Positions 1 through 34,972 of a DNA stretch of 64,000 nt are shown in pieces. The stretch lies in IMG/VR virus record IMGVR_UViG_3300027541_000009, positions 124,001 through 188,000 of that record. One strand, written 5' to 3'. Below the pieces are notes generated by a model, which saw only the letters and a list, made by a program, of their open reading frames with translations, was not told where the DNA came from and ran no database searches. The position numbers and the translations under genes were made by a program. Each line of letters opens with the position of its first letter. Position 1 is the stretch's first letter.

Positions 1-582
1 CCAAATTGTGGACAAAGATATATTGATATTCCTCTCCCCTATCAAAGGGATATGTATGCAAGAAATTATACTGCAGTCTCGATTGAAAAAGCAGGAGTGA
101 CTGATGATGATATTGTTATAACAAGTGATGCTGATGAAATTGTAAATCCATTAATTTTAGAAAATCTAAATTGGTTTAATCCTAATAATTTATATGTTGC
201 AATGCAGAGAGCATTTTATTATAATCTTAATACTCATTATCATGATAATTGGAGAGGTTCAAGAATTTGTACTTGGAAAAAAATAAAAAATCTTTCTATA
301 GACAAACTGAGAGATAGTATGTGGAATGAATCTTATCGAATTCAAGATGGTGGATGGCATTGGAGTTATTTTGGTGGTGTGGAAAGATATAAACAAAAAA
401 TGGTCGCAGGTGCCGATGCTCAACCTTCAATAATAGTGAATGCCGAAGATATAGTCAGTGAAAAGAAAGACCCTTTGGGTAGAGGTGTAAATTATTTTCC
501 TGTTCCTATAGATGAATCATTTCCACAGTACATTGTAGATAATCAAGAAAAATATTCAGAATTTATTACGCCATGGAATTGA
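1..582 (+). CDS. GT17-like glycosyltransferase (beta-1,4-GlcNAc transferase family), 5'-truncated by the window edge
   Basis: Frame is open from base 1. Contains SDADEI (DxD-like) and GGWHWSYFGG motifs typical of GT17. Confidence 0.7.
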   Translation, partial: PNCGQRYIDIPLPYQRDMYARNYTAVSIEKAGVTDDDIVITSDADEIVNPLILENLNWFNPNNLYVAMQRAFYYNLNTHYHDNWRGSRICTWKKIKNLSIDKLRDSMWNESYRIQDGGWHWSYFGGVERYKQKMVAGADAQPSIIVNAEDIVSEKKDPLGRGVNYFPVPIDESFPQYIVDNQEKYSEFITPWN

Positions 583-1505
583 TTGAAGGTGTAGCACTTT
601 CAAAACTATGTGATTATTCTTTCGGAGACCAGTCTGGTCAATGGGGGAATATTTTTACATCATTTATGAAAGATGCTAATTTATTGAATCTTGAATTCGT
701 TAATAGATTATTTGAGATTAAAAAAAGCAGAGATTATATGACTCTGTTTATTGATAATATTCGTTTATATAAAAGACATATTGTTGAGGTTAGTGATTCT
801 GATAGACCATATGTCAATTCATTAATGGAAAGGAGTGATTTATTAAATCTTTGCTCAAATTTTCCTGAAATGAATTTTATTATTTTCACAAATCTTGAGG
901 ATACTCCCATTGATGATTATATCTTTGACTTGATACCCAATAATGTTTTGTGCATTTCTGCAGTAAATGCTATTGCTAATGGTGGAAAAGTTATCCCAGC
1001 TCCTTATGGACTGCAGAGAGCAATGAATCCTAATGATATGAGAGTATCTGAAATTAAAGGCGCTTCAAAAAATCTTCCAAATAATCCTCCCGGACTTTTA
1101 TATGTGAGTCACAACGAATCTTCCAATGAAGAAAGGAAGGGAATAAAAGAAATGTTCAGGAATAAATCTTGGGCAGTGGTACATGAAAATAGAGTTTCTT
1201 TTTCTGTGTTTCTTTATAATCTTAGTCAATCAAAATTTATGATATGCCCAAGAGGAAATGCTATTGATTGTCATCGTAATTGGGAAGTTCTTTATATGAG
1301 AAGAGTTCCAATTATGAAGAGGCATCTTTATTTGGAAACTTTATTTGCAGATTACCCTGTTCTTTTTGTGGATAAATACTCCGAAGTAAATGAAAATCTA
1401 TTAATAGAAAACGATCATTTATTCCAAAAAGCTCAAAAAATGGATTTGTCTGGATTGACACTTCCAAAATTTTTTGATAATATCGTAAATAAGTACACGA
1501 ATTAA
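573..1505 (+). CDS. Exostosin/GT47-like glycosyltransferase
   Basis: C-terminal SKFMICPRGNAIDCHRNWEVLY..RVPI motif. Confidence 0.65.
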   Translation: MELIEGVALSKLCDYSFGDQSGQWGNIFTSFMKDANLLNLEFVNRLFEIKKSRDYMTLFIDNIRLYKRHIVEVSDSDRPYVNSLMERSDLLNLCSNFPEMNFIIFTNLEDTPIDDYIFDLIPNNVLCISAVNAIANGGKVIPAPYGLQRAMNPNDMRVSEIKGASKNLPNNPPGLLYVSHNESSNEERKGIKEMFRNKSWAVVHENRVSFSVFLYNLSQSKFMICPRGNAIDCHRNWEVLYMRRVPIMKRHLYLETLFADYPVLFVDKYSEVNENLLIENDHLFQKAQKMDLSGLTLPKFFDNIVNKYTN

Positions 1506-26882: not shown

Positions 26883-26934
26883 GGTAAACAAATGTTACGG
26901 AACGCAACGTTCCCTTAACATTGTTAGACACCCG

Positions 26935-27032
26935 ATAACCGAGACCTATGGGTGTATAAATTACGTCTCTCATATCCCCGCTAAGGGTGCGGGGAGCATA
27001 GTATCTCCACCATTTCCCTGATGGTCTTACTA
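26935..27032 (+). ncRNA. PhotoRC-II-like structured psbA leader RNA
   Basis: GAGAC/GTCTC pairing, CCCCGC-TAAGGGT-GCGGGG hairpin and CCAT/ATGG hairpin directly 5' of a phage psbA; similarity to the motif is recalled, not searched. Confidence 0.6.
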
Positions 27033-33753: not shown

Positions 33754-33962
33754 GCGCAGGATTTGGTGGTCAAGGAAAAGAAAATAGAATTGGTAAAGAT
33801 GCCAAAATTACTATTGACTTAGATAATATAGACATAGTTTTAAAACAATATAAGAAAATTAAAAAATATAAGAAATCATCTCTGTATGCTATCAAAACAA
33901 TGGATGGCACAGAAGATATTGTGAGTTCATTAATTAAAGAAGCAGAGGAGAATCCGTTGTAA
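33750..33962 (+). CDS. Hypothetical protein
   Basis: ATGA overlap; operon position. Confidence 0.6.
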   Translation: MSAGFGGQGKENRIGKDAKITIDLDNIDIVLKQYKKIKKYKKSSLYAIKTMDGTEDIVSSLIKEAEENPL

Positions 33963-34288
33963 TGGGGAAGCATTACCTACTTAATTTGTATGGATGCTCG
34001 TTTGTCCTTTTGGACGACGAGCGTTGTCTTATAGACTTATTGGAAAACGCGGCAGCAGCGAGCGGCGCTACTGTGGTTCAAACAATTTCAAAAAAGTTTG
34101 AACCACAAGGAGTTACTGTAATATGCTTGTTGTCCGAAAGTCACATCAGCATTCATACATGGCCAGAAGAAGGTAAGGCAGCAGTTGATGTTTATACTTG
34201 TGGTGATTGTAATCCAAAGATTGGATGTGATATTATTATCCAACAACTTTATGCTACCAATCATACATTAAGTTATATTGAGAGATAG
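33962..34288 (+). CDS. speD: S-adenosylmethionine decarboxylase proenzyme
   Basis: GKHY, FEPQGVT, LSESHISIHTWPE, DVYTCG. Confidence 0.95.
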   Translation: MGKHYLLNLYGCSFVLLDDERCLIDLLENAAAASGATVVQTISKKFEPQGVTVICLLSESHISIHTWPEEGKAAVDVYTCGDCNPKIGCDIIIQQLYATNHTLSYIER

Positions 34289-34309: not shown

Positions 34310-34356
34310 CACAAAACTTCCTATATAAGTTGAATAGAGGTATAATAATCCTCTAC

Positions 34357-34661
34357 CGTTCATCCTATGACTAAAGCACTCTTGCTTTTAGCATGGGTTC
34401 CTTTCCTCTTCGTTTCAGCGCCACAAGCATCTAGCATCCAACAGGTTGCAGTTTCTTGCGACACCGCGATGGAACTAATGGACATCGTTAAAAACGACGA
34501 TGTAGTAATTCAAAAGATAGAGGACCGATTGTTATTAGAACTCCGAAAGGATTTCATAGTAAAGTGCTAAAACCTAATAGGACGGAAGTAAGCCGACGCG
34601 GAACGCAATTCGTTCATTCGCTATTCGCAAATAGCGAACGGAAACGCCGACTGAAGGAACG
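34357..34661 (+). ncRNA. Tandem glutamine-riboswitch-like (glnA/Downstream-peptide type) RNA; first P2 loop contains an ORF
   Basis: Two CGTTC...GAACG units with GGAAGTAA and CTGAAG junction words and a repeated GCCGAC, upstream of a DUF4278-like ORF. Confidence 0.6.
34367..34570 (+). CDS. 67-aa putative exported peptide embedded in the RNA element
   Basis: ORF track; hydrophobic N-terminus; two Cys. Confidence 0.55.
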   Translation: MTKALLLLAWVPFLFVSAPQASSIQQVAVSCDTAMELMDIVKNDDVVIQKIEDRLLLELRKDFIVKC

Positions 34662-34693
34662 CTCTTTAACCTAAAAACTAAGGAGAAAACCTA

Positions 34694-34831
34694 ATGTCAA
34701 AAGTAGTTTATCGCGGTGTTGAATACGACAAGCAAAAGCGTCTTGAGTATCAACAGCAAATGATGCAACAACCCCAACAGTATAACGAAAACTATCGTGG
34801 TGTTAAGTTTGTAAAGGAGGGGCATAAGTGA
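34694..34831 (+). CDS. DUF4278-like small protein, 45 aa (not in ORF track)
   Basis: MSKVVYRGVEYD...YRGVKF (two YRGV motifs); AAGGAG RBS at 34680-34685. Confidence 0.7.
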   Translation: MSKVVYRGVEYDKQKRLEYQQQMMQQPQQYNENYRGVKFVKEGHK

Positions 34832-34929
34832 TGAAAAAACTAAACTTTCTTCAACTCATTAAAGAACAAAAACAAAAAGAAGAGAGGCGTCAAAAAGCAT
34901 CTCTTGCTACTCTGGTAGCAGCAAAATGA
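34831..34929 (+). CDS. 32-aa basic helical peptide (not in ORF track)
   Basis: MKKLNFLQLIKEQKQKEERRQKASLATLVAAK; TGATG coupling; GGAGG RBS. Confidence 0.6.
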   Translation: MKKLNFLQLIKEQKQKEERRQKASLATLVAAK

Positions 34930-34934
34930 CTTAA

Positions 34935-34972
34935 GAGGTGGACTTGACTCCACCTCTTTTTTTGTCTATAAT
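34935..34972 (+). promoter_or_regulatory. Terminator hairpin fused to a sigma70 promoter (TTGACT-17-TATAAT)
   Basis: GAGGTGGA/TCCACCTC stem plus T run; TTGACT 34944-34949, TATAAT 34967-34972. Confidence 0.75.

Follow-up and report, generated by a model that had tools for sequence, protein, structure and literature searches.

We herein show that the leader of a small-protein gene in an uncultured T4-like cyanomyovirus carries a tandem element, assigned by homology to the glutamine riboswitches, in which the first aptamer is folded around a whole 67-codon gene. The element occupies positions 34357-34661 of the window, i.e., the whole 64,000-nt stretch of DNA analyzed here (positions 124,001 to 188,000 of the IMG/VR record IMGVR_UViG_3300027541_000009), and lies upstream of an IF17-like (DUF4278) gene. 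The layout recurs in 68 of 96 distinct phage tandems sampled, which hold an ORF in P2 of one or both units, and standard RNA-family searches miss the split units. The observation on which this study was based is confirmed, since every motif of the original prediction was found where it had been placed (Table 1), with the single correction of wording that the helix looping out the ORF is the inner helix P2, not the outer P1. Chance does not explain the arrangement, as each of the two bipartite patterns occurs once in the 64-kb window and 0 times in 100 dinucleotide shuffles. The accompanying interpretation, in contrast, is only partly supported: the tandem glutamine riboswitch, the splitting of its first aptamer by a real ORF, the failure of Rfam to see the split copy and the pairing of CTCTTT with AAGGAG, which is conserved in the clade of the window, hold, while the proposed assembly of both units into one large aptamer is not supported as stated, and the idea that translation gates aptamer assembly fits the geometry but remains inference.

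Table 1. Features of the split tandem element and its surroundings; positions are those of the window.
Position	Strand	Feature	Observations
34322..34329	+	TATATAAG box resembling a T4-type late promoter; candidate promoter of the riboswitch transcript (inferred)	A TATA[AT]A[AG] box lies 31-35 nt upstream of CGTTCA in 81 of 188 distinct contexts; a sigma-70 promoter scan found nothing convincing directly upstream
34335..34355	+	5' hairpin (TAGAGG/CCTCTA) with a conserved TATAAT-containing loop, 1 nt before aptamer 1	Stem covaries among relatives (AGAGG/CCTCT, GGGAG/CTCTC, AGGAG/CTCCT, GGGG/CCCC) while the loop is kept
34357..34368	+	Aptamer 1, 5' half: P1 5' strand CGTTC (34357-61), A (34362), P2 5' strand TCCTAT (34363-68, with A34367 and T34368 of the ORF's ATG)	The 13 nt CGTTCATCCTATG are invariant in 52 distinct ORF-A units
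34364..34397	+	Local hairpin that sequesters the ATG and most of the P2 5' strand; competes with P2	In the MFE and centroid folds
34367..34570	+	Nested ORF-A, 67 aa: hydrophobic signal-like N-terminus, then a Cys31...Cys67 domain predicted as two helices	218 relatives in IMG/VR
34482..34503	+	8-bp hairpin inside ORF-A (codons 39-46) with frozen synonymous sites	In the MFE fold; codons 37-46 nearly invariant at synonymous positions in 52 copies
34577..34605	+	Aptamer 1, 3' half: P2 3' strand ATAGGA (34577-82), C, GGAAGTAA (34584-91), GCCGAC (34592-97), GCG, P1 3' strand GAACG (34601-05)	22 of 29 columns invariant in ORF-A units
34606..34610	+	Linker CAATT between the two aptamers	Linkers are 3 nt in 130 of 196 distinct contexts and 3-6 nt overall
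34611..34661	+	Aptamer 2, compact: P1 CGTTC (34611-15)/GAACG (34657-61), 9-bp P2 hairpin (34617-25/34630-38), GGAAAC, GCCGAC, TGAAG	Unique in the window
34662..34685	+	Expression platform: anti-SD CTCTTTA (34662-68) pairs with TAAGGAG (34679-85), extending CTCTTT (34662-67)/AAGGAG (34680-85) to 7 bp	In the MFE fold
34694..34831	+	Regulated gene: 45-aa IF17-like small protein (DUF4278, two YRG motifs)	Pfam DUF4278 E 0.0024; 5 of 6 homologues match, best E 1.2e-5; PHROG 5049 E 6.6e-9
34831..34929	+	Small ORF (about 32 aa) overlapping the previous stop (TGATG)	No family hit
34933..34958	+	Intrinsic terminator closing the small operon	10-bp stem followed by a T run

The phage carries a PhotoRC-II RNA, and its nearest isolates are the freshwater Synechococcus phages DSL-LC03 and DSL-LC02, which cover under 20% of a 20-kb query. 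A covariance-model search had been named in advance as a test of the assignment. At the Rfam gathering thresholds no glutamine riboswitch is reported in the window, whereas with an E-value threshold unit 2 (34609-34665) matches the type 1 glutamine riboswitch (RF01739) over the full model at 34.7 bits against a gathering score of 35 (E 7.5e-6), a margin that by itself neither admits nor excludes it from the family. Unit 1 gives no hit because of the 208-nt insertion, as had been predicted; the sequence with the ORF deleted in silico was not searched, and identity to natural compact orthologues was used instead. The type 2 glutamine riboswitch (Downstream-peptide motif, RF01704; threshold 33 bits) returned no hit in the window at E <= 10, and its 3' pseudoknot-forming hairpin is not evident. 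No intron family matched in the Rfam scans either; the flanking halves match a riboswitch aptamer instead.

Comparison with other phages supports the reading of unit 1 as a split aptamer. The downstream gene has homologues in S-PM2, S-CREM1, P-TIM68, DSL-LC02 and S-SRM01, and in S-PM2, S-CREM1 and P-TIM68 it is preceded by two compact aptamers 3-5 nt apart, the pair in S-CREM1 being annotated as a glnA riboswitch (PMC9964418). The 5' piece CGTTCATCC and the 3' piece GGACGGAAGTAAGCCGACGCGGAACG of the window are identical to the compact unit 1 of S-CREM1, and only the GAAA loop is replaced, by an extended stem (TAT/ATA) plus the ORF. Compact unit 1 copies score 35.6 and 28.9 bits on RF01739 (DSL-LC02 and S-SRM01, respectively) and 28.8 and 24.6 bits, i.e., below threshold, on RF01704 (P-TIM68 and S-PM2, respectively). 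In DSL-LC02 and S-SRM01 it is unit 2 that encloses an ORF of 50-55 codons, again with the ATG in the 5' strand of P2. The P1 helix CGUUC/GAACG is present in both units and invariant in all relatives. However, the core motifs of RF01739, the junction CGGAAGUA and the 3' strand GAAGGAACG, are divided between the units: unit 1 has CGGAAGTAA but GCGGAACG, with no GAAG, whereas unit 2 has TGAAGGAACG but CGGAAAC (GGAAAC or GCAAA instead of GGAAGUA), hence each unit is atypical and the occurrence of both motifs in one aptamer is left undecided. The same division is seen in all phage tandems.

The nested layout is widespread. In IMG/VR, ORF-A (the nested ORF of the window) has 218 relatives and the unit 2 ORF (ORF-B) has 251; in every full-length copy ORF-A lies in P2 of a unit 1 and ORF-B in P2 of a unit 2, and all four combinations of compact and ORF-bearing units occur. 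To remove the bias of searching with the ORFs, we fetched 120 viral contigs that match only the 3' half of unit 1, which gave 96 distinct tandems: 28 compact/compact, 41 compact/ORF, 14 ORF/compact (the type of the window) and 13 ORF/ORF. A scan of genome contigs with the 16-mer GCCGACTGAAGGAACG proved poorly suited, since 118 of 120 loci were chance matches and only two short MAG contigs carried real units; thus, it does not show whether host cyanobacteria have nested ORFs. Marine versions are present in isolated phages, including P-SSM4, P-SSM2, P-SSM3, P-HM1, P-HM2, MED4-213, P-RSM4 and S-TIM4, where the nested genes are annotated as hypothetical proteins. In the P-SSM4 locus (L406), unit 1 (L406:691-926) encloses PSSM4_169.2 and unit 2 (L406:930-1121) encloses PSSM4_169.3, followed by a YRG protein. 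Rfam reports no glutamine riboswitch in the P-SSM4 or P-HM2 loci even at E <= 1.

The nested ORFs evolve as coding sequence. ORF-A is open in all 52 distinct copies (66-70 codons), and ORF-B in all but one of 57, the exception, S-SRM01, reading on to a later stop in the platform. Third-codon positions vary most, and synonymous changes make up 61% (ORF-A) and 69% (ORF-B) of single-nucleotide codon differences. The two cysteines of ORF-A, C31 and C67, are invariant, and AlphaFold (AF2) places two helices between them, although at low confidence (pLDDT 55), too weak for a fold search. Most nested ORFs inspected share a hydrophobic N-terminus and two cysteines about 34-36 residues apart. Profile comparison with hhalign showed that freshwater and marine unit 2 ORFs are one family (99.3%), while the relation of marine unit 1 to unit 2 ORFs is suggestive only (53%, E 1.4e-4) and ORF-A could not be linked to the other nested ORFs (1.5-1.7% probability, not significant). 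No function can be assigned to ORF-A, as searches found no Pfam, PHROG or Atlas relative and no match in isolated phages.

Covariation of P2 among cyanophage homologues was another support asked for beforehand, and it was obtained from the wider family but not from the clade of the window, in which TCCTAT and ATAGGA never vary, although the spacer between the stop codon and ATAGGA has 19 versions. Compact P2 helices are 99.6-100% canonical in their first four pairs, with three to five pair types per position. ORF-bearing units were detected without using pairing (CGTTCA, an ATG within 16 nt that opens an ORF, and the ORF ending near a 3' half), which gave 184 distinct units. In unit 2 (38 distinct flank pairs) the first six P2 positions are 91.7% canonical, against 71.4 +/- 2.8% for shuffled partners (maximum 79.4% in 1000 shuffles) and 41-56% for shifted registers; position 3 is C-G, U-A or U-G and position 4 is C-G, A-U, U-A or U-G, with no mismatch at either. 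In unit 1 (17 flank pairs) the support is modest, 88.2% against 81.9 +/- 2.0%, position 4 showing U-A, A-U, C-G and G-C plus five mismatches, and some marine copies have only 3 clean base pairs. Moreover, the residue encoded before the C-terminal Asp of unit 2 ORFs tracks the 5' strand (Ile/ATA with TCTAT, Glu/GAG with TCCTC, Trp/TGG with TC(C/T)CA), and RNAalifold on 52 ORF-B units recovers P1, P2 and a further helix between the first and last codons, with A-U, G-U and G-C variants.

The ORFs start, and many of them stop, within conserved aptamer elements. The ATG lies 9-12 nt from the start of CGTTCA; when long P2 inserts were found by base-pairing alone, it lay 9-11 nt away in all but one distinct ORF, and that one was a mis-assigned 5' half. 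None of the nested ORFs seen has its own Shine-Dalgarno sequence, whereas the downstream gene has a strong one, AAGGAG. Of 107 unit 2 ORFs, 105 end at the UGA of GACUGAAGG, so their last six codons (..DAKAD) are dictated by the aptamer, and 15 of 77 unit 1 ORFs end at the UAA of GGAAGUAA (..IIGRK), the rest, including that of the window, stopping 5-17 nt before the 3' half. A ribosome on these ORFs must therefore unwind P1 and P2, and for many of them the binding core as well, while a folded aptamer conversely buries the start codon. This mutual exclusion follows from geometry; its regulatory use is inference.

Folding of the 342-nt leader (z = -3.3 against shuffles) did not recover the long-range P1/P2, which says little for a ligand-stabilized fold with tertiary contacts, but it revealed a conserved competing fold that the original prediction had missed. 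Nucleotides 34365-34378 pair with 34383-34396 in the MFE fold, and with one more terminal pair the hairpin spans 34364-34397. It is predicted in all 19 distinct variants of the ORF-A 5' region, with one compensatory A-U to G-C change (34375/34387) and several wobble changes, and is about 4 sd more stable than shuffles (about -13.5 against -4.8 +/- 2.2 kcal/mol). It is absent from marine unit 1 and from unit 2 ORFs, and explains the frozen synonymous sites in codons 1-11, the second frozen stretch (codons 37-46) forming the hairpin at 34482-34503. Because the ATG is paired both in this hairpin and, at the helix end, in P2, the sequence does not tell us whether glutamine would raise or lower ORF-A translation; hence, the sign of any regulation is unclear in the window type.

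The expression platform is consistent with published work on type 1 riboswitches. Of 118 distinct platforms, 37 begin with CTCTTTA, and every such platform among the 25 folded forms the same 7-8 bp hairpin. Other clades place the pyrimidine stretch elsewhere, and across all clades the anti-SD signal is only weak (-3.6 against -2.5 kcal/mol); the CTCTTTA hairpin is specific to one clade. This arrangement matches the model proposed for the Synechocystis gifB riboswitch, in which the C following P1 and its neighbours pair with the RBS, and glutamine binding is postulated to melt that pairing and switch translation on (PMC6212724). The downstream protein matches DUF4278, the N-terminal domain of the glutamine-synthetase inactivating factor IF17 (PMC6212724; PMC6316151), thus the position of the element in the leader of a DUF4278/IF17-like gene is also as expected.

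Given these results, we favour, at a probability of roughly 0.75, an element in which aptamer 2 is ordinary and aptamer 1 has the same conserved core but a P2 helix closed around a real gene instead of a short loop. By analogy with gifB, glutamine binding should release the pairing of the Shine-Dalgarno sequence and switch translation of the downstream gene on. In this view the same nucleotides serve as aptamer strand, start site and, in the clade of the window, sequestering hairpin, and folding of aptamer 1 and initiation or transit of ribosomes on the nested gene cannot happen together on one mRNA. We infer that the element couples glutamine sensing to translation of the nested gene, and conversely makes assembly of aptamer 1 depend on ribosome traffic. 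What our data demonstrate is the anatomy, the coding status, the conservation and the wide occurrence of nested ORFs in cyanomyovirus glutamine riboswitches, whereas glutamine binding by the split aptamer, which was not assayed, and the existence and direction (ON or OFF) of control over the nested gene are inferred. Compact tandems, moreover, show that unit 1 has a role without any nested gene.

Among the alternatives, the one that survives best, although we consider it unlikely, is that the nested ORFs are passengers, i.e., small phage genes sitting in the one place of the aptamer that tolerates insertions, the distal loop of P2, and possibly shuffled by recombination between the repeated aptamer halves, with the riboswitch working as usual and no regulatory coupling. 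P2 loop length and sequence are indeed free in compact units (10-28 nt), the four combinations of compact and ORF-bearing units are as expected from modular exchange between repeated units, and in the freshwater ORF-A clade the stop codon has moved out of the aptamer, with a variable spacer and no conserved frame. Against this, the position of the ATG is nearly fixed, the nested ORFs seen lack a Shine-Dalgarno sequence, 105 of 107 unit 2 ORFs keep the frame ending at the UGA of GACUGAAGGAACG despite very divergent proteins, and geometry alone forces interference between ribosomes and P1/P2.

The single large aptamer of the original prediction, in which GAACG 34601-05 pairs with CGTTC 34611-15 and the outer strands 34357/34657 close a domain combining GGAAGTAA of unit 1 with TGAAG of unit 2, is much less likely. 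The division of canonical features is systematic across phages (unit 1 has GGAAGUAA but no GAAG, unit 2 has GAAGG but no GGAAGUA), the inter-unit hairpin is feasible (-4.1 kcal/mol) and the linker is never shorter than 3 nt. However, the pairing is an automatic by-product of two identical invariant P1 sequences, so that covariation offers no test of it and nothing independent supports it, each unit alone scores near the Rfam threshold, the MFE fold does not use it, and when unit 2 also carries an ORF the proposed inner domain would exceed 200 nt. Still less likely is that insertion of ORF-A destroyed aptamer 1 and left only aptamer 2 functional. Rfam sees no unit 1, and the local hairpin is more stable than the long-range P1/P2 pairing (-13.5 against about -11.6 kcal/mol before any loop penalty), but both halves are kept almost unchanged in 52 distinct ORF-A units whose ORF sequences all differ, and split units are the majority state across the family, including in divergent marine phages. 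Finally, that the roughly 200-nt insert is a structured non-coding RNA domain, as the frozen synonymous sites, the two conserved hairpins and the better-than-shuffled folding might suggest, is very unlikely, since the ORF is open in every copy, the variation in unit length lies largely in the non-coding spacer after the stop, synonymous changes dominate and the protein pattern is conserved.

Tandem glutamine riboswitches (PMC2864571; 157 doublets in PMC9481103) and glutamine riboswitches in cyanophages (PMC9964418; PMC9004378) have been described previously, and the function of the type 1 riboswitch has been shown (PMC6212724). The element shares with RF01739 the P1, a covarying P2, the core motifs, the position in the leader, the anti-SD directly 3' of P1 and tandem occurrence, but P2 of unit 1 encloses a 204-nt protein-coding gene, in relatives either or both units do so, the core motifs are divided between the units and the covariance model cannot detect the split units. 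With RF01704 it shares the conserved CGUUCA...GGAACGG nucleotides and the regulated gene family. Architecturally, the closest analogue is an ORF (homing endonuclease or maturase) looped out of a peripheral helix of group I and group II introns, where a helix of a conserved structured RNA is closed around a gene and the core is left intact; here, however, the RNA is a ligand-sensing aptamer in an mRNA leader, the ORF starts within the helix strand itself and can end in the ligand-binding core, and nothing suggests mobility by homing. In leader-peptide attenuation and dual-function RNAs (trp leader; SgrS/SgrT, RNAIII/hld, tmRNA) ribosome position decides which RNA fold forms and one RNA is both structured regulator and coding sequence, but no small-molecule aptamer takes part. 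The nearest precedent is a one-sentence note that some uORFs of Mycobacterium tuberculosis lie within glycine, cobalamin and ydaO aptamers (bioRxiv 10.1101/2022.06.01.494293), which raises the same question of interplay between translation and ligand sensing, while in our case a conserved 50-70 aa protein family fills a looped-out stem across many phage contigs. In the literature accessible to our searches we found no description of a conserved protein-coding gene looped out of a riboswitch aptamer helix, with its start and often its stop codon inside conserved aptamer elements. Within that literature the architecture is new, while the riboswitch class itself is known.

It is possible, although we hold it somewhat less likely than not, that cyanomyovirus glutamine riboswitches are a natural class of 'gene-in-aptamer' switches, in which the ligand-sensing fold and the translation of a nested small-protein gene control each other, with the start codon in P2, the stop codon in the binding core and, in the window type, an extra start-sequestering hairpin that competes with P2. 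One leader would then integrate the glutamine level and ribosome traffic, and partition expression between the nested protein and the downstream IF17-like protein. On the sample taken here, this class would be the majority form of the phage tandem riboswitch and is missed by current RNA-family models. Riboswitch censuses of phages ("a rare feature in phages", PMC9004378) are therefore underestimates, as about 70% of the sampled tandems have at least one split aptamer. The architecture offers a natural system for asking how translation and ligand sensing interfere on one RNA, for which isolated phage-host pairs are available (P-SSM4, P-HM2, S-SRM01, DSL-LC02). Since the regulated gene family (DUF4278/IF17-like) is linked to inactivation of glutamine synthetase in cyanobacteria, the element bears on how phages read and manipulate host nitrogen status.

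The neighbourhood of the riboswitch provides further features (see table). PhotoRC-II RNA, which scores 84.1 bits on RF01717, marks the window as a cyanophage. The stem of the hairpin directly preceding aptamer 1 covaries among relatives, while its loop keeps TATAAT; it is preceded at a fixed distance by a TATATAAG/ATAAATA box resembling a T4 late promoter, although we do not know whether the hairpin acts as a 5' stabiliser or a promoter element. Inside ORF-A, an 8-bp hairpin covers the invariant KND motif, and its codons are frozen at synonymous sites in 52 copies, which points to an RNA-level constraint of unknown purpose. A weak match to Rfam freshwater-2 RNA (RF02980, 17.1 bits against GA 49.9) rests mostly on the AAGGAGAAAAC..ATG ribosome-binding region and is probably not meaningful.

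Coordinates of features in the window and in other phages
Sequence	Position	Strand	Feature
window	26916-27009	+	PhotoRC-II RNA
window	33962-34288	+	speD (S-adenosylmethionine decarboxylase)
window	34335-34355, with box 34322-34329	+	hairpin directly before aptamer 1, with upstream box
window	34482-34503	+	hairpin inside ORF-A
window	34623-34696	+	weak freshwater-2 RNA match
window	34828-34929	+	ORF of roughly 32 aa
P-SSM4 (L406)	691-1121		tandem riboswitch, ORF/ORF form
P-SSM4 (L406)	416-601		manA RNA, 184 bits
P-HM2 (L407)			tandem riboswitch, ORF/ORF form
S-SRM01 (L005)	1062-1240		nested unit 2 ORF with changed core UGA

The well-studied Prochlorococcus phages P-SSM4 and P-HM2 carry the ORF/ORF form of the tandem riboswitch, and Rfam finds no glutamine riboswitch at these loci; in P-SSM4 the element lies just downstream of pstS and the manA RNA. 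In S-SRM01, the core UGA is changed to GGA (GACGGAAGG), so the nested unit 2 ORF reads on through P1 and ends at the TAA of CTCTTTAA in the anti-SD, a natural variant that could test the effect of the stop position. Two short MAG contigs (L294 and L342), labelled Acetobacteraceae (3.8 kb, freshwater) and Dehalococcoidia (5.3 kb, Red Sea), carry phage-type glutamine aptamer units and are probably mis-binned phage DNA.

Downstream of the riboswitch, the lysine-rich ORF overlaps the stop of the DUF4278 gene (TGATG) and is followed by the terminator; it gave no family hit. S-SRM01 annotates a 33-aa ORF in the same overlapping position. The speD gene lies directly upstream, as in S-PM2, and no terminator was found between it and the riboswitch, so read-through transcription is possible.
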